From assembly GCA_904063045.1 (NCBI GenBank), contig CAJFCJ010000006.1, forward strand, positions 2,036,946-2,100,945: DNA of 64,000 bases, given 5' to 3'. The stretch comes from Dimorphilus gyrociliatus (taxonomy: Eukaryota; Animalia; Annelida). A model generated the notes under the pieces. That model ran no database searches, was not told the origin of the DNA, and saw only the letters and a program-made list of their open reading frames with translations. The translations under genes were made by a program, and so were the position numbers. Below, in pieces: positions 16,006-32,788 of the stretch. Each line of letters begins with the position of its first letter. Positions within the stretch are counted from its first letter, which is position 1.

Positions 16006-19000
16006 CTAAATTTTAGCTTCATTCTTCCATTTGTAAGTTCCTGTATAAGTGAAATTATACTTTTTGAGAAGGTCGTCGGATTCTTTTGGTCCTCTTGATC
16101 CAAAGGTGTATTTTACAGGTTTGATCCTCTCTTTGTCAATTTTATGGAGTAACGGTGTAAATATTCTCCAAGCTTCGGCTAATTCGTCGGATCTGACGAA
16201 ATGGATTTGTGATCCTAAAAATACGTCTAAAATTAAACGTTCATAGGCATCTGGTAATTTCACTCCGGCATAGCGTGATGCATAAGTCCTTAAAAAATAA
16301 ATAAATCATAATTCATTCTTTAAATTTACAACTTAGTTCCACTTACAAATCAAGCTCAGTTTCTTCACAATCAAAAGAGTTACCCGGCTTCTTTCCCATT
16401 ATCTTCATATAGACAGCTTCGTCCGGTTGTACACGTATAACAAGTTCGTTTCTTGCTAATTGACCTCGAGTAAAAATATCACCAGAGACATCCTTTAACT
16501 GAACTCTAACTTCGGCTTTACGTTCATTTAAAGCTTTCCCGCAACGAAGTATAAATGGAACTCCGTCCCATCTTTCATTTTTGACAAATAAGACAGCGGT
16601 AGCGAAGGTTGGCGTTACTGAATCTGTTAGTTTTTAGGCTATTTAATAACTTCTATATTACTTTTAATATATTTGTATATACGTTACCTTTAGAAACACC
16701 AGGATCGTCTAAATAACCTGTTCTTGAATCTTCATTAGGTCCATTAGGATCACCCATATATTGCCCAAGAACCACTTCAGTTATTTCAATAGGCTTTATA
16801 CATTTTAGAACTTTTACTTTCTCATTACGTATATCTTCAGCGTTTAATGATACAGGTTTCTCCATTGCAATCAGAGATAGCATCTGCAGTAGATGATTCT
16901 GCATCACGTCTCTATTAACGAGAGAAAAAAATCACAAATTAAAAAACCTCTAAAGGTATAGAAAACTCCAAGAAATGGAAATAATTAAATTTTTAAGTGA
17001 AAAAAAAAATAACAATACCTTATTATTCCAAAAGTGTCGAAGTAACCTCCTCTACCGAATGTTCCAAATGGCTCTTTAAATGAAATTACAACTGATGCTA
17101 TATTATCTCTATTCCACAATGGGGCAAACATTCTATTCCCAAATCTTTGTATGACCAAATTTTGAACCATCTCTTTACCAAGATAATGATCAATACGATA
17201 TAACTGATTTTCCACAAATAGGCCTATATGAAAAAGAAATAGACTATATATAGTATAATTAATTTGCTTATATTATTATATTGCTTACCAGATAAATGCT
17301 TAGATAGTTCAGCTGAAGATTGAGAATCATGTCCAAATGGTTTTTCTACGATGATACGAGTCCAGCATTCCCTAGAGAGTATTCAATGAGTTAATTCTTA
17401 ACGATAAAGGCGGGAAATTATATTATTTACTTTGGAGCCATACAATAGTCATGTATGTTTTTCGTTATGCTTTGATAGACGGTAGGTGGTAAGGCAAGAT
17501 AGATAATTCTATGAGCCTTACAGCCTATGCATTATAAAACATAAGGAATATTTAATCTAATCAAACAATTATATTTAATATAATTTTTCTTACTTAAGCC
17601 ACGTATATGGCTATCTAATGTTTGAAAGTCGGGACCCTTATCGTACGAACCAGCCACGTATGAGTTCATCTTCCAAAATTCTTCCAACACTTCATTTTCA
17701 TTTGGGCCTACCTTAAAAAAGGGTTCAACTTTCTCACGAAGTTCCAATATTGAAAACTTTGATCGAGCATAGCCAACGAAAAAAGTCTGTTTAGGTATTA
17801 ACTGATCCTTATAAAGTCCCCATAATGTCGGATAAATTTTCTTCTTGGCCAAATCTCCCTATAATTTAATAAAAGTGTAAAAAGTTAATTAATGCTATAA
17901 GGAATATCTTGATATTGAAAGGATAGAGTAAACTATAATTATTTAATGAGATAGTCATGTGATGCTGAACGTGAAAAAAACTACGAAAATAATGATCGAT
18001 TAGATATTGTACACCTATCCATTTTTCATGTAGAAAATAATAGAGTATCTAAGAAATTATGCATCCTATATATCTTACCGATGCACCACCAACTACAAAC
18101 ACATGAGGAACTTGATAATCTTCAGTCTTGTCCAAACTCTCCTTTAGTAATCGAATACCTTCTTCCTCGAATTTGATAACTTCTTCATGATCACTCATCA
18201 CTGCTTTTCGTACTAAGCTATAGGTGGAAGATGTTAGATGATCCATAGAAGAAGACAGACAGAGAATATGGATAATACTTTCAAAATTCCATAGAATTTA
18301 TTACATTAAAAAAATTAACTTCTAAAATTGAAAGTAAAAATAACAGGGAAGAAGATTGCAAAACTATTCAAGACGAATAAACAGCTCTTTATATAAATCA
18401 ATATAAAATCGTGGTTTTCATCGACCACATATACATATATAGTATCTATTTTTAGATCTTATCCACGCTTAAAGAATAGTTCTATCCCGATAAAATCGTC
18501 TTATATTTTAGGGTCGAATATTGCCAACAGAGAGCACTAATGGTTACAAATCGATGGCGTTTAATGATTTACATGATCACTAGTGGGGAAAATAGCTGAG
18601 TAATCTTACGTATGTTTAATCTAATATGCAGTCACTATGTTTAATATGAATTTTAAGAATATTGTTCCCAATTGTTAAACTTCTTTAGTTGAATGCGTTT
18701 TAACGCCTGGAAGAGGTAAATTGATCTCAAAGTTCACCAAAAGGGCACAAGCTATTACTGTCAAAAGTTTAAATAATATAAATCTAATTTAGAGAGTTTG
18801 TAAAAATTTCGAAAATTTAGGCGTAAAATAAAAAATTAAGATGAATTTGGAAAAAGAACAAAAATATTCCTAAATCTTTTAATTAAGAACTAACTATCTT
18901 ACCAAGATTTCTCGTAGCGTTTATACATTGTCGGCTTAAGTTGGCTATATCTGCTTCGGAACTGTATCAACTATAACTCTGAGACCTTCAAAGCTAGACC

Positions 19001-19614: not shown

Positions 19615-20982
19615 ATGGCGCCTAGCGCAAGTTATGTGAAAGAGCAATTTTACCTCGTCGTAGGGCAAAGTAGCGTCGTTGTTAAATTTATTTGTGTTGC
19701 TGTGACAATAGGTTATTCCCTATCATTCAGTGAATCCGCTGTCAACGTCTTAAGGTACGTTAGTAAACTAGAAAACGAACGATAATAAGGAAATTCTTGT
19801 TATATTGTTTATTTACATGATGTCAGAGGTTGTACATCGAATGATTAAGAAAAGTATAAGTAAAAGATAATTATATAATTTGCATATAATATTTTCTGGT
19901 GTAGATTTTAGGGGGAAGGAACAAGAGTGTTGTGTTGAAAAAATTAATATTTATGTTTTATGTGTCTTAGCGTAACCGCTGGACGGATAATACCTCCAAA
20001 TTTCTGGATATGGACATTTTTAACGCATAGTTTAATAGAACGACATATTTGGAATTTAATTGTCGATATAGCTGTAATTTTTCTCTGTGGGAAGCTTTTG
20101 GAACCGTTATGGGGTGCTTTAGAAATGCTCATCTTCTACAACGTTGTAACAATAGGAGTTGCAATCAACACAACATTTTTCTATATGTTTATCTATCTCA
20201 TAACGAAAAATGAGACTTATTTATTTGGCACTCATATTCATGGAATGGCCGGTTATCTGGCTGGCTTTGCAGTTGCCTCAAAGCAAGTAATGCCTGATCA
20301 TGTTCTAGTCAACTCACCATTTGGAAAATTGCGAAATAAACATGTTCCCATGTTACTCTTTTATACATTTATACCTATTAGGCTGTTAGGCGGAGTAGAT
20401 GGTCCTTTTCCAATTATGTTCGGTTTTGGTATAATTGTTAGTTGGATTTATTTAAGATTTTATCAAAAACATTCCAATGGTAATCGAGGAGATTACGCCG
20501 AGAGTTTTTCATTTGCTAGGTAAGCTTTTATAATATTAATTCTATATTTTTCAATTCATTTTTCGTTTCATATTTAGTTTCTTTCCTACTGCGCTTCAAC
20601 CAGTAGTTTCGGTTATCAGCAATAGCGTATTCAACGTTTTTGTAAAGTTAAGAATCTGCAAGAAACCCCAGAGGAAATATGACGTTAGCAATCCAACTAC
20701 CATTACTGTGACACTTCCAGGAAACGATCCGGATGCTGAGCGACGAAGGTTAGTCAGCCTTAATTCTTTTTAATTTTATTAATTTTTGAACAATTGTTTT
20801 TTAATCATAGGCAAGTAGCTCTAAAAGCGTTGAATGAACGCTTAAATAAATCCGAACAACCATCGGATGCTCCGTCCTGGCCTGCAATGGATGACGAGGG
20901 TACCGAAGAATCTGGATCAGTGCCTAACGATTCATCCCCGACTTCAAAAGTAGAAGGTAAAGAAAATACATCTTCCAGTTGA
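19615..20982 (+). CDS. TMEM115: Transmembrane protein 115 (Golgi, rhomboid-like)
   Basis: MAPSASYVKEQF... | VTAGRIIPPNFWIWTFLTHSLIE...LEPLWGALE...WIYLRFYQKHSNGNRGDYAESFSFA | SFFPTALQPVV...PGNDPDAERRR | QVALKALNERL. These are the conserved TMEM115 motifs. Confidence 0.93.
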
Positions 20983-21203: not shown

Positions 21204-22517
21204 TTGTATATGTATACATATAGTTTTTTTTATCAATTTTGTTTTTTTTCGTGCCCTAACCTCATTAAAACAAAAAACAACTATTATAACCAAATTGGCA
21301 GACCTAACTAATTTGAGAAAAGAAACAGAATAATAACACTGAAAAAAAGAATTATTTATTAATTTTTAGTTTAACTAATTATCTATTAAACTTGTACTAA
21401 TAGTTTAACGTTGACTTTGCTCGAGATGCAAGTATTTTCGTCATCTGGATGGATTTTATAAGCGAACAAAAAAATAAACCTTTTTTTTTATAATTCGAAC
21501 ACGCTTTTTGCTTTTTCATTTTACTATTTCTCTATAAGTTTATATCTGCTTCCATTACAATTATCACTAACGCGTAAAACCCGCCTTATTCGTCAATTTC
21601 ATATTTTACTAAGATTTCTTTCTCATCTTACTCTCCCTCCTTTCCATCTTAAAAGCTTATAGAAAGAAAAACACAATAGCTACTTTAGTAATAGAGATGT
21701 TTTATTTTTTTTATATCATTGTCTTTTATCTCTTGTCTCAAGTATTTTTATCTGATAACAGCTTGTAAATATGCTAGGTAAAAGACAAGAGTTAATGAGA
21801 AACAGTTGAGCCATTCAATTAAATAATTAGAATAAAATTATTGACTATTCTTTTTTTCATTTAAAAATATAAAATGTAACAAAAATGGCTTATGAATTAA
21901 GAAATGTCATCTTTTCATTTATTGTATCTTTGTGTCTACTAGAATCAAAATTAGAAAGACTTCTAAAAATATCATATATAAAATATCCTTTATATAGCTG
22001 ATGGCAGATGTTAGCAGATGCTACACAAAAAGAAAAGATATATTAAAATAAAAAAAGAAGTTTTAACAATTGTCTAAACGCATGACGCTTTTATTGATCT
22101 CTGGAACGAATAAAGTACACAATCAATGACATTATCACATAAAGAAATCATGTTTTTTTTTTAAATAAAAAAACCGATCACCTGTTTTTCTCTTCAAGTT
22201 CTTTTTTTTAAAATATTTAAAGCGAAATTAAATTTGTTATGTCTACAAAACTCGGTCATTAAAAAAAAAAAAATAAAGTAAATAGATATTAGTTTGTATA
22301 TGGTTAGTTGAGAGAAAGATAAAACGGACAAATGTGATGAATAAAATGATAAAAACTACTTGAAACATGAAGGTTTCAAATATTAATCCTTTCAAAAGAA
22401 AAAATTATATATATGTATGTAAATGTTTTTTTACGACTATAAAAGTATAAGTATACAAAAGAAAAGAAATAGGAAAAGAAGATAGGTAGGAGGATATGTT
22501 GAATTTCTAGCAATCAT

Positions 22518-24579
22518 CTAGTATACCCAACTAACTGGGACCCATTGGTTGTCAGCATTTAATTTATCAATTTCCGCTCTTAACTTTCTATAAGTTTCAT
22601 CCATGTTGTCATTGACGATTATACAATCAAAATATGCTTTATACGTCTTTTCAATCCTTGCTGATTCGGCAAGGGTCTTCTGAAAGTCTTCTTCCTATAT
22701 GAGGAAAGGAAAAATGTTAATATATAATGTATACAGTAAATATACTGTAAACTTACAGTTTTTATTTTATTAGTTTTGCCCCTTTGACGAGCAAACTCGT
22801 GCATATTTCTCATAATCTGAACAGGAGGAGCCGCAATGAAGACGATAAATGGTAGGAATTCACCACTTTTTATTCCCTTAAGCGCCTTTTAAATGAAAAG
22901 AATAGAAATTATATTTTAAACTATTAATATTTCGAATATTTTGAATCCACTTACAGCTGGATTTATATCGAGAATGCACATTTTATTCTGTTTCGTAACG
23001 TTTGTTATACTCTCGAATTTTGTTCCATAATAATTGCCTTCGTACGCTCCCCATTCAAGGAATTTGTTACCTTGGATTTCTTCTTCCATTAGTTCTTTAT
23101 CCATAAAATGGTATTGATTACCATCTATTTCATTCAAACGTTTAACGCGGCAAGTATGCGGTATAACACTGCCGAACCTATGTGGTTCAGCTTTCAATAA
23201 GAATTGTTTCAAGGTTCTCCTTCCGACACCTTGGGCTCCGATAAGAACCAGAGTTTTTCTATGGAATGGCGGTAATTTTGTAACTTCTTCATAAATGGCC
23301 AATTCGTATTTATCGAATTCGGAATTCTGTTTAGCCTGATAGAGCATTTTCTTCTTCTTTTTCGTAACTATACCGCATAGATAGGATTTTTGCGTATGAT
23401 CCAAATCAGGTTTAACGAAAGCTTGTCTTTTCTCTTCCAATGTAAGTGATGGTATAATACCTGTTTTTCCTGATCCATCTACTTTAGCTGCTTGCCACCA
23501 CTTAGAATCTTCCATATTAACAACTTTTAGTATATCGCCGTCTTTAAAGGCCAATCCAGCGTCACGACAAGGTATAACCGAATCCTTTTTAGGATCGTAA
23601 TTAAAATGGGCTTTAACATACATCTCGGTACGTCCAGTTTGTTCATCAAAGGCGGGAATAATCTTGATTTTTATATTTTCACCACTTTTACGAATTAGCT
23701 CTTGTAATTGTTGAGGAGTTGTAACCTCCTCTCCATTAACTTCCTTTATTAAATCACCAACGTGCAATAATCCTATTATCGTTGCATTGAGAAAGAGTAA
23801 ATGGAAGGGAGACATTTCGTATGAGTAAAGATGATAAACATCATATATCAATACATGAAAAGAAAATAAATATTCATTGATTAAAATATTAAATCATAAA
23901 AGGCTAATAATTAAAAAAACATATATAGAAATAAAGGAAATCAAAGGAAAAAATAACAATCTGTAATAAAAAAAAAAACAGAAAGAAATAAGAAAGTTCC
24001 TAAAATAATATCTTCTCTTAGTCTTCTTTAATAATACATTTATTCTGGATAGAGAGATAGATAAATAGAGAAACATTCTTATTTCTTTTTTCGTGTATCT
24101 AATTAATCATTTCACTAATTTTTTTTTCACCTTGTTCATCTATAGGTGAACCGGCAATAACTCGAGTTATGATTAAATCACCCATTTGACTGACACGTAC
24201 AGTAATTCCCTGTATAATTTATTATTAATTTTGGATAGTTAAAAACACTTGATACTTGATAAAATGCAGAGAAATATTAATGAATATTAATTATTATTGT
24301 TCAATCATGCTATTATACTTAATAAAATTGATAATTATGTGGAATTTTTTTAAAAATCTAAATAAAACTTAAATATTAATCAATATGGCCGCATTTAGAG
24401 AGGAGGGAGGGAGGAAGAGAGAGAAAGAGAGAAAGATAAGCAGCAAGAGATAGAAATCAAATAAGCAAAAAATGTAATCACCGCATTTAGCGACAACACT
24501 TCCTTCAATAATTCTAGCAATCATTAAGCCATTTGGTTCTTGTTGCAGAGTGATACCCTGGTTCAAAAGATTACAATTA

Positions 24580-24610
<31 letters not shown>

Positions 24611-25471
24611 CTGTATATGCTAATATATAGTACTATAATACTATTATATTATATTACTACTATTAGTAATAAAATCATATTTTTAAATTGATTATCATAA
24701 AGCAAGGAAGAAAAAGCTTAATTATCTTAATCATTTAAATACATTGATTATACTTCATATAGAAAATCTCTCTTTTGTTTTGTGTCCTATTATATAGATA
24801 TTATAATAAAAGTCGTACGAGTGATTCTCCAGGCTTCTTCTTTATTCCAATCATATTAAGAGCTAATTTGCTTTGTTGAACAGGAACAACATCTTCCGGA
24901 GGGACGAAATCATTTGATTCGTCTGGTTCCATTTCGAACTCGTAATTTTTCCACGCAACATCATCGTGAACTTTCAATAGAGCCTAAATTAATTACAATT
25001 TTAATAAATACAATTTAAATATTGTTTCTATTTCTAACAAACCTCCAAATGAGGATCTTGTAGAATTGTTGTCAATTCAGCAGCACCCTGACTTTTATGA
25101 TTAAATGGTTCGAGGTCGTACAAGATTTCATCAATTAAATTCTTTGAATAGCCATCTTGACTATTCGGTTCATTATATGCAATAGTTAATTTATCGTACG
25201 TCTATGGAAATTGTTAAAAATAGTAATAAAAGTATAGTAGATTATTAAAATAACTAATAAAAAACTTACATTAACCAGAGTTGCCAAAACTGGATTACTT
25301 AATATATTACCAAGTTCATTAACTTTTTCTTCATCATTTGGTTCATTGACCAAAGAATCCAAATTTTGTAAAATATTCTCAAGATCACCTAATTAAGAAG
25401 AAGGTAGAATTAACTCCGTAATGATGGAAATGTTTCTACTTACTCAATCCCGTTTCAGTTGGTTCGGGCAT
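22518..25471 (-). CDS. MAGUK p55-subfamily scaffold of the MPP2/MPP6(PALS2)/Varicose type: L27-L27-PDZ-SH3-HOOK-GUK
   Basis: Start MPEPTETGL at 25471. L27 region ...LLNHKSQG..LNPHLE|ALLKVHDDVA. PDZ GESL|GIT..|GLLHVGDLIKEVNG. SH3 YVKAHFNYDPKKDSVIPCRDAGLAFKDGDIL. GUK RKTLVLIGAQGVGRRTLK. C-terminus QWVPVSWVY*. Contains two alternative PDZ exons (see findings). Confidence 0.93.
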
Positions 25472-25861
25472 AATTTCTCTCCTTTTCAAAATTCTATAAC
25501 ATAATATAAACAATGATATTGAAAAGGCTAAAGAAACATGAAATTACAATAATTACAAATATCAATCTAATAATATAATGCCTTGAGAGTTTACTTATAT
25601 TTATTTATTTAACTATATAAGCAGTAAAATTACAGAGAGTATTTCCAAATAGTTAAAACAATATAACGATAAAATTATTACAAAATATATGTAGAACATT
25701 AGCTAAAATCGATAGAAATGTCGTTTTCGTAGCCATTCTTATAAAACCTTATTACAAACACATATTGCAACCTTTTTTTTGTATTCATAAAAACTATAAA
25801 ATCAGACAATGAAGAGAGAATATTACGTTTATAAATATTAAATAAAGTGCTTAATTGCTTA

Positions 25862-26044
25862 TTAGACATGATTTCTATGCTTTTCTGAGCAAACTCCTAG
25901 TTTATAGGCCATAAAAACGTATACTACACACATAACGCAAGCTATAAAGCAACCAAAAGCTATTAAAAAATATCGATAACTTGTATCCATGATGAACGGA
26001 TTTGTTAACATTCGAAAATCAAGTTCTATGGGATCGTTAGGCAT
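25862..26044 (-). CDS. Possible 60-aa single-TM microprotein
   Basis: ATG-initiated ORF with an A-rich leader, one hydrophobic Cys-rich helix (YFLIAFGCFIACVMCVVYVFMAY) and a short polar tail. No homology recognised. Confidence 0.35.
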   Translation of the reverse strand: MPNDPIELDFRMLTNPFIMDTSYRYFLIAFGCFIACVMCVVYVFMAYKLGVCSEKHRNHV

Positions 26045-28649: not shown

Positions 28650-29980
28650 CTAAGCAAGACTCAATAACGATGATTGGTCAGGGGCTAAAAGTTCATGCTG
28701 TTGATCAAAAGATGCTTGAAATAAAAATTTCTTAACTACATCATTCGAATATAAATTTCGATAATATTGGAAAATATTTGGTTTCCATTTTTGAGCTTCA
28801 ATTGTTTCCATAGTAACAAATGATAGAAAATTTATAATATCTCTCATCCTCATTGCGTAATCATTTCCGTAAGCACTCTGGAGGTATCTTGTAAAGCCTA
28901 TAGTCATTTTATTATAAGGTGACTGAAAGTGAGGGTATTGTCGATTTGGTCGTAGGATGGACAGCATTACAATAAGTGTTAATTCTTCAAATGTTGGATG
29001 TAATTGACGATATCGCTCAAAAATTCTGCTCTTCATGGCTGCATCTTTTTTATGATAAAAACAATTTATAGTAACGAAGAAGCGGTGATCACGGATCATT
29101 AGAGTTAATTGTTCCTCATCCCAAGTATGAATGTTAAATCCCAAAACAGTCACATATATTATATCAATAAAAGACCTGAGGTGGTAGAAAATCTCATTTT
29201 CTGTTAATTCAGACACTCCTGGTATTCTCTTTGAAAGTTTGATCCACCTTTTGATACTAAATGCAATAACTTTTTCATCTGCTATGGTAAACTTCTTTCT
29301 ATCATTTTTCCAATCCTGCTATATGTAATATATCGTTGTATTGGTCCAATGAACAGTTCTGGTCCACACTGTCAATTCCTTCTTTTGCAGTTTTCAAAAT
29401 ATCTTCTAAATTTGGAAAATCATTTCCCCAGTCAATGTTTCGTATATCACAAAGTACTTCACAACATCTCATAAGCATTTCATCAGCGTCTGTAAAACTT
29501 GGTACAGACGGTATAGCATACATCATTCTCTTCTTGGAAATTTCGGTTGCTCTTTGATAATTCACCAATTTTTTCTCTTGTGAATAACGTCCTTGTTTTT
29601 TATTATTAACAGACATACCAACACTGAGACATTTCTGAAATCTACACTATCGACAAGCAAACACGGCACGTTGATTTGGACTACACTGAATTCTTCCATT
29701 ACGTTTGTAATGTTGATGTTTTTTTGAACTTCTTCTAAAGAATACTTTACAAGCCTCGCAAGTGAATGCGCCGTAATGAGATCTAACAAGATGAGTTTTT
29801 AAAAAGTTAGTGTGTCATAGTATGATAAATAAGATCAGAAAATAGAAAATATATGTACTAAATTATAAATATTTACCCAGATGAAGAACTGCCACATACA
29901 CAGCATGGGGGAAGAGATGTCCTATCCACGCCTAGAAATTCGTCTATTTTAATAACATGTTTCGTTTTTTCTGACTCCAT
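28650..29980 (-). pseudogene. Nuclear hormone receptor (C4 DBD + LBD) carrying an in-frame stop; pseudogene, null allele or assembly error
   Basis: Finger 1 is intact: CCVCGSSSSG|SHYGAFTCEACKVFFRR. Finger 2 reads YKRNGRIQCSPNQRAVFACR*CRFQKCLSVGMS, with TAG at 29649-29647 and Arg (CGT, 29703-29701) at the first Cys position. The LBD signature WIKLSKRIPGVSELTENE lies in a different frame after about 29320, and the LBD stays open to 28650. Confidence 0.7.
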
Positions 29981-31342: not shown

Positions 31343-32788
31343 TCAGGCGACTTTATGCAAGTTCCTGCCCAAAATAGACCGTACATCCTGAACGAAACGC
31401 AGAGCGTCGAGAATCGGTAATAAATTCAACAAACAAGTGTCAGTAGGATCGGAGAACCATGATTTAATAGGAATAGCATTAAGCGGGTAACTTCGGTAGG
31501 CGGCTGGCGAATTATCAACTATAAAAACCCCGCTTAGGTCATCGCTAACCGCTTTTAAATCCTTTGAATATGAACCGTTATCCATATGGCAATGCTGCCT
31601 ATAATATCGCCTCTTGAACATGCACTTGTTATGATCGAGTTTGTCGGCTACTGCTGAGCCATAAATCTCCATGCTGGCCGTGAAGACGACCAATTCGTAC
31701 CAGTTAGAGACGGTTTGCAGGAAGAAGTCGACATGAGGTCGTTTATGGACGAAGAAGCGAACAGGATGCTTGTCGATGGTCACTCTTAATACAAAATCTG
31801 CAGGCGTTCCCGGTTTCACAGTTTGCCGAAAATTACCGTCATGATGAGAGTGTATAAGAGTTTCGTCCAGATCGAGAATCAGCGTTTTCTTCCTTACACA
31901 ATCTGTAATTGTAAATATGTGTAACAATAATTTTAAAGTCACTATCTAGGACTGCCCTCCCTTTTTTCAATTCTCTTATCATACTTAAGTCATTATGTAA
32001 TAATTCTTTTCAAAAACAATAATCATATATATATAGATCACTTGATAAAAACGGATTAAGGTTAAAAATAGTAAATCATAACTATTAAATAGTCAGCTAT
32101 TAATGCAATTTTTAATATTAACTGACTTTTAAAGGACACACTCTTTCTTTGTTTCGTAAGTATCTAGGCGAATTTGCATAAGAGTGAAATTCCAGACCGA
32201 TTGCATCTAAATAAATGTTGCAATTGTAAAATTAAGAGATGTTCTAGCTAGACTATCAGATAGATATTAGTAAACCTTTCTTAAAATTTCCTATTTCCGT
32301 GGTGAGGTAAGCTGATGCGTCTAGTTGAATGTACGATATTGCTATTCATCATTTAGTTCTATCATGCAATAATCAGTGTCGGCGCGGACTATAAAAGTAA
32401 AATACTTACTTAATTGCGTTTTAAATGAGACGCTAAGAGGAACCATTTCATAGCGGACGGTCTGGTGTTGTACAACCTGGAAATATAACATACAATTTTG
32501 TAAGTGGAGTAGGCCTAATATTGACAATATATGACGTCACACGTGGAAAGTCGATGGCGGTAAAAACGTTATATATTCCGTTGGAATATAAGAATTTATA
32601 GATTTTAAGATCTATATGTAAACTAAAGTTTCTTTTGCTGAAGTAACTATAAAATACGTATAAATTGCTTTTGTAAAAAATCAACTTACGGCTCTAATTT
32701 GCTTCTTAAGGCAATAGCAGAGGAATCCCCATATTTTTGAGGCAAATAACAGGAAACCACGAACCCCCATTACGATGAACTTTAACAT
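31343..32788 (-). CDS. CTDNEP1: CTD nuclear envelope phosphatase 1 (Dullard), HAD family
   Basis: [33 protein letters not shown] | [15 protein letters not shown]...QL | [23 protein letters not shown]...[18 protein letters not shown]...[14 protein letters not shown] catalytic motif present. 3 exons. Confidence 0.96.

Follow-up and report, generated by a model that had tools for sequence, protein, structure and literature searches.

Gene and exon layout

The window (the whole stretch of 64,000 nucleotides of Dimorphilus gyrociliatus DNA that was analysed) carries on its reverse strand a MAGUK gene of the MPP2/MPP6 (PALS2/Varicose) type, DgyrCDS4662 (protein P0135), which is the single such gene in this species. 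The exon chain read from the DNA reproduced P0135 residue for residue, and its introns were confirmed by spliced contigs. Precomputed Pfam annotation of P0135 listed L27, PDZ, SH3 and guanylate kinase domains, and both hallmarks of an MPP2/MPP6 (PALS2)/Varicose p55 MAGUK were present, namely the L27-L27-PDZ-SH3-GuK architecture and the C-terminal ...QWVPVSWVY. The named relatives of the protein were MPP6, MPP2 or PALS2 throughout, and the nearest solved PDZ structure was that of human MPP2 (2E7K, E 2e-19). Two small exons, referred to as cassette exons A and B, lie in tandem within the PDZ-coding region, and the product is 557 aa long with exon B and 556 aa long with exon A. The features are as follows:

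22518..25471, reverse strand: coding part of DgyrCDS4662, 8 coding exons plus 1 alternative exon
24819..24983, reverse strand: constitutive exon 4, 165 nt, phase 0 to 0, with joints 24982/25042, 24818/24556 and 24818/24208
24482..24557, reverse strand: cassette exon A, 76 nt (25 codons + 1 nt), phase 0 to 1, with ends cag/GGT...GCG/gtg
24210..24481, reverse strand: A-B intron, 272 nt, spanned by an unspliced contig (24180-24510) in run X3
24131..24209, reverse strand: cassette exon B, 79 nt (26 codons + 1 nt), phase 0 to 1, with ends cag/GGA...AAG/gtg
22955..23772, reverse strand: constitutive exon 6, 818 nt, entered in phase 1

Exon 4 encodes the last part of L27C, then betaA of the PDZ domain and the first half of the carboxylate-binding loop (...KKPGESL), and its last base, 24819, is followed directly by the donor site (...PGESL/gt, phase 0). 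Exon 6 encodes the PDZ domain from betaD to betaF, with alphaB among these elements, followed by SH3, the hook and the beginning of GuK. It opens at 23772 with 'ga', which together with the last base of either A or B makes the Gly codon before LLHVGD, as had been proposed in an earlier note on this DNA that joined both cassettes to GLLHVGD. The coordinates, translations, AG/GT ends and phases which that note gave for A and B were likewise exact when re-read from the sequence.

The two cassettes aligned with each other from end to end, with B one codon longer, and are thus homologous adjacent exons that have strongly diverged from each other in DNA. Each of them also matched the PDZ cassette found in orthologous genes. 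A 501-nt stretch containing both occurred once in the 77.9 Mb assembly, which marks the locus as single-copy. Because the locus is single-copy and A and B are so diverged in DNA, a paralogue or an assembly duplicate was rejected as the source of the second exon. The earlier note had singled out exon B as the one invisible in the ORF track; this needs correction, since the public gene model P0135 includes exon B, and it is exon A that is the unannotated copy. At a glance, the ORF translations of the neighbouring genes resembled glucose-6-phosphate dehydrogenase, a multi-pass membrane protein, a nuclear receptor and a CTD-phosphatase-like (Dullard-type) protein (at 16006-18246, reverse strand; 19960-20523, forward strand; 28650-29980, reverse strand; and 31343-31942, reverse strand).

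Only one cassette at a time preserves the reading frame

The frames of the four possible products were read by joining the exon pieces in a local script. The frame stayed open with A alone or with B alone. When both were included a stop codon fell inside B, and when both were skipped a stop codon fell 7 codons past the joint. The proposal that taking both exons in, or leaving both out, breaks the frame was thus borne out, and this frame rule as such is certain. All splice sites of the cassette region were ordinary GT-AG sites.

Both cassettes are joined to both neighbours in RNA

RNA evidence was drawn from assembled contigs of three sequencing runs (X1, X2 and X3) placed on 22400-26000. Run X3, which is labelled as Dimorphilus gyrociliatus and matched the locus at 100% identity, has no library type on record; that it holds RNA is evident from its spliced contigs. 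It contained all the ordinary introns of DgyrCDS4662, and also the four joints that the use of A and B calls for:

24818/24556, reverse strand: upstream exon to A, depth 314 in run X3
24481/23771, reverse strand: A to downstream exon, depth 252 in run X3
24818/24208, reverse strand: upstream exon to B, depth 164 in run X3
24130/23771, reverse strand: B to downstream exon, depth 222 in run X3

All four had GT..AG ends, lay on the gene strand and were 100% identical to the genome. The X3 junction contigs extended only 27-30 nt into the shared exon, which is expected of a branch in a k=31 graph but is shorter than the 31-nt bridging rule requires. Summed, the A and B depths roughly equalled those of the neighbouring 5′ exons in X3 (about 419-526), and both forms were commonly used at comparable depth in this run, with A somewhat ahead by this rough measure. 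Run X1, a coral metatranscriptome from a separate study with contigs 95-99% identical to the locus, again yielded both A joints, and one of its contigs contained exon A in full (76 nt), spliced to 165 nt of the exon upstream. Independent support for the use of exon B came from the public gene model P0135. The full set of junctions by which the earlier note proposed to check both exons was therefore recovered in X3, and the A pair a second time in X1.

The same proposal included the absence of a direct A-to-B junction. Neither this joint nor one skipping both exons was present among the contig joints of X3 and X1. This agrees with the proposal at the level of contigs, which drop rare variants, and transcripts with A+B or with neither exon may therefore occur at a low level.

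Unspliced X3 contigs covered the A-B intron (24180-24510) at a depth of 92 and the intron between B and the downstream exon (23745-24159) at a depth of 37, and a bin at 24699-24819 in the intron between the upstream exon and A had an X3 depth of about 15. Since it lies inside the removed piece under either exon choice, the A-B intron may be longer-lived in splicing intermediates. A deep pile of run X2 at 23852-24093 was set aside as low-complexity sequence of other organisms and not of DgyrCDS4662. Transcripts of this gene did occur in environmental RNA, at 95-99% identity in X1 and at 85-95% identity in X2 (a marine metatranscriptome), and Dimorphilus or close kin must therefore have been in those samples.

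The exon pair is conserved in annelids and a nemertean

In a relative represented by a Logan genomic contig (L001; 85% identical in protein over the large exon), exon B was kept at positions 493-571 with equal length and AG/GT ends. Because this contig starts inside the A-B intron, the comparison with the relative covers exon B only. Eleven codons differed from Dimorphilus exon B, 6 of them by silent and 5 by replacement changes, and codons 14-26 had silent changes only. The introns flanking exon B in the relative were essentially unalignable with those of Dimorphilus.

In Capitella teleta (KB291945.1), the annotated cassette (L002:10508-10583, 76 nt) was followed after 118 nt by an unannotated second copy (L002:10702-10780, 79 nt, AG/GT ends). 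This copy was found by tblastn within the 22.6 kb locus with an E value of 3e-07, so that the search of relatives suggested in the earlier note did return a second cassette; the public model CAPTEDRAFT_181775 uses the first exon only. Owenia fusiformis, which belongs to the earliest annelid branch, has two annotated proteins of 564 aa (CAH1788609.1 and CAH1788610.1; P0129 and P0234) that are different only inside the cassette. The nemertean Lineus longissimus has two RefSeq isoforms (XP_064646403.1, X1, 608 aa, and XP_064646404.1, X2, 607 aa; P0144 and P0235) with a cassette-only difference, and in its genome a 76-nt exon is followed in tandem by a 79-nt exon about 1.5 kb later. In Dimorphilus, Capitella and Lineus alike, the frame was open and the AG/GT ends were kept in both copies. 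Since the duplicated exon is found in Capitella as well (E 3e-07, with intact AG/GT ends) and in Lineus, the A/B duplication is not a chance resemblance.

No second copy was found in the following intron in Helobdella (leech), Lamellibrachia (tubeworm), Liolophura (chiton), Glandiceps (hemichordate) or Porites (coral), and a search with the B-form PDZ region alone gave 3 matches and no further isoforms. The cassette exon itself has the same boundaries from coral to bilaterians, and must therefore go back at least to the cnidarian-bilaterian ancestor.

The suspicion that one cassette is a decaying, unused duplicate and that the gene makes one protein only, to which the single exon in each of the Dimorphilus and Capitella public annotations might lend some colour, runs against the joining of A and of B to both neighbours at similar depth in RNA contigs, the open frames and AG/GT ends of both copies in three species, the mainly silent changes in exon B of the relative where the introns have diverged past alignment, and the two isoforms annotated in Owenia and in Lineus; because both copies are kept in distant relatives, we regard such a dead duplicate, which the earlier note had named as the outcome that would overturn its proposal, as ruled out or very nearly so.

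Our main reading is that A and B are a mutually exclusive exon pair that is real, expressed and conserved, to which we assign a probability of roughly 0.87. According to this reading, the small exon for betaB-betaC-alphaA of the MPP2/6 (Varicose) PDZ domain would have been duplicated in tandem to give A and B, each of which is spliced to both common neighbours, with exactly one entering each mRNA. The choice between them may be regulated by cell type or stage, and any A+B or skip-both products would presumably be cleared by nonsense-mediated decay.

Two further sequences touch on the cassette boundaries. An annelid-like Logan transcript (P0127) had a cassette with Thr in place of the near-invariant betaC Ala and with Glu in place of Gly at the exon joint, and may, judged by these residues, be a B-type isoform or a paralogue in another species. 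In a predicted isoform of chimpanzee MPP6 (P0075; Pan troglodytes MPP6 isoform 5) an upstream exon is skipped and ...EPHFQ is joined directly to GVTFRV, from which it follows that primates have the same exon boundary immediately ahead of the cassette.

The cassette covers one wall of the ligand groove

The position of the cassette in the domain was read from an AlphaFold model of the B-form PDZ domain (P0135:139-233), built with 26 orthologues and having a mean pLDDT of 84.8, in which the following elements were seen:

residues 7-12: betaA
residues 21-25: betaB
residues 31-36: betaC
residues 41-45: alphaA
residues 53-57: betaD
residues 65-74: alphaB
residues 78-84: betaF

In its B form the cassette corresponds to model residues 20-45. 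This segment starts with the final residue of the carboxylate-binding loop and runs on through betaB, the loop between betaB and betaC, betaC itself and alphaA. The model thus matches the extent that had been proposed for it (the end of the carboxylate-binding loop, betaB, betaC and alphaA). As modelled, the cassette forms one wall of the groove (betaB) together with betaC and alphaA, and the alphaB wall and the other domains are constant. In the PSD-95 PDZ3-peptide structure, ligand positions –1 and –3 are contacted by residues of betaB and by the betaC residue that would align with the Ala of 'IARI'. We put at about even odds that the A and B PDZ forms would bind different sets of C-terminal ligands, or would bind such ligands with different affinity.

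The betaC Ala of 'IARI' was found in 25/25 canonical cassettes compared, from coral to ape. It is replaced by Thr in Dimorphilus exon B and in the relative, and by Ser in Capitella exon 2 and in the second Owenia form. Each copy therefore appears to be under its own constraint, as is suggested by a Ser/Thr shared among the annelid second-type exons versus a near-invariant Ala. This bears on the explanation that both exons are used but that their PDZ forms are functionally equivalent, the choice being unregulated noise, maintained because there is nothing to be gained by the loss of either exon. Such equivalence would sit well with the occurrence of both forms together in one whole-sample run, and with the leech, tubeworm and chiton, which manage with one copy; it accounts poorly for a pair retained since the base of the annelids or earlier (Owenia, Capitella and Dimorphilus) and for the Ala-to-Ser/Thr change at a near-invariant betaC position that the annelid second-type exons share. 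On balance we consider it unlikely, at something like one chance in a handful or slightly better.

As an observation on the same region, the single cassette of the siboglinid tubeworms Lamellibrachia and Ridgeia (P0123 and P0223) has a 6-residue insertion in the betaB-betaC loop.

One duplication or several

The order of a 76-nt exon followed by a 79-nt exon was common to Dimorphilus, Capitella and Lineus, and an MG[DE]L motif was common to the second-type exons of Dimorphilus and its relative and of Capitella. A reliable tree cannot be built from sequences as short as the cassettes. A single ancient duplication with later losses is the probable history.

Separate duplications of the same exon in Dimorphilus, Capitella, Owenia and Lineus would fit several of the observations: in overall identity Dimorphilus B resembled canonical exons and Capitella exon 2 to about the same degree, the betaC Ala is retained in the second copy of Lineus, the chiton has a single exon of 26 codons, and several lineages have one copy only. 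Against repeated origins stand the three lineages with the same 76-nt-first, 79-nt-second layout, and the Ala-to-Ser/Thr change shared by the annelid second-type exons, two of which also share MG[DE]L. We therefore think that recurrent duplication is improbable, though it deserves to be kept in mind.

On the assumption of a single duplication, the exon pair is common to annelids and nemerteans, and the switch may thus be more than 500 million years old. We tentatively suggest, and would not yet wager on it, that an ancient spiralian switch (annelids plus nemerteans) re-tools the PDZ groove of MPP2/6/Varicose and so might direct a junctional scaffold to different membrane partners in different cells.

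Relation to known splice switches and PDZ scaffolds

In FGFR2, mutually exclusive tandem-duplicated exons (IIIb and IIIc) swap part of the binding domain, with a demonstrated change in ligand specificity. The Dimorphilus pair resembles this system in that exactly one of two neighbouring exons, homologous and equal in phase, is used, that part of a ligand-binding domain is swapped and the rest kept constant, and that the arrangement is old and conserved. It differs in that the domain concerned is the PDZ domain of a MAGUK scaffold, and in that the change in ligand specificity was demonstrated in FGFR2, whereas here it is inferred. We consequently regard the Dimorphilus locus as a well-supported further case of a known kind of splice event, and not as a new kind.

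Within the gene family, the PDZ domain of Drosophila Varicose binds the C-terminus of Neurexin IV (PMC2414870), and the known isoforms of Varicose and of human MPP6/MPP2 are different in the L27 domains and not inside the PDZ domain (PMC2414870). The Dimorphilus gene belongs to the same family and has the same PDZ domain; unlike those isoforms, its two forms differ inside the PDZ domain. A survey of human tandem-duplicated exon substitutions mentioned PDZ once, as a PDZ-binding motif, and named no MPP, MAGUK or DLG gene in its text (PMC8373072). No description of mutually exclusive exons in PDZ, MAGUK, MPP2/6/7, PALS2 or varicose genes, or in Dimorphilus, was found in the full-text literature searched, which was of limited coverage. 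The statement of the earlier note that it knew of no report for MPP2/6/Varicose genes hence holds for the literature searched, but the Owenia and Lineus annotations already contain isoform pairs that differ in the cassette only. Those pairs are the closest likeness to the present case, being products of orthologous genes that differ only in the same cassette. They exist as database entries only, with no account of them found in the literature searched. The Dimorphilus and Capitella models each lack one of the two exons.

Two gene models are consequently incomplete, that of Dimorphilus without A and that of Capitella without the second exon. The diversity of PDZ scaffolds is usually ascribed to the gain or loss of whole domains; here, a conserved splice switch alters the binding surface of one domain and the rest is kept. 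A and B also constitute a natural pair of PDZ variants in which the part of betaB, betaC and alphaA in ligand choice could be studied. The switch further predicts a septate or cell-junction scaffold with two sets of partners in annelids and nemerteans. If the ancient-switch reading is true, this PDZ domain would be the first one described as being reprogrammed by mutually exclusive exons.

Control of exon choice

Steric hindrance between the splice sites of the two cassettes was rejected as the basis of exclusion, because the introns between the copies are too long (272 nt in Dimorphilus, 118 nt in Capitella and about 1.5 kb in Lineus). In Dscam1 exon 6, competing RNA structures built from docking and selector sites control the exclusive exons, and the present locus is similar in having tandem alternative exons of which one is chosen. 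Complementary docking and selector sequences had also been suggested for the flanking introns here. Inverted-repeat scans for such pairing gave only weak AT-rich inverted repeats, and the inter-intron duplex energies of the three introns, compared with dinucleotide shuffles in what is a coarse test, were without excess in Dimorphilus or Capitella (z 0.0 to +2.6). Unlike in Dscam1 exon 6, the complementarity between introns was thus no higher than in shuffled sequence in either species, and the suggestion found no backing. Exclusivity may owe more to a regulated choice of splice sites or to the decay of wrongly joined products.

With regard to the composition of these introns, a (TA)n run lies at 24570-24620 in the intron before A and a CT-rich tract at 24397-24442 in the A-B intron, and a similar CT-rich tract is located upstream of exon B in the relative (L001:100-220).
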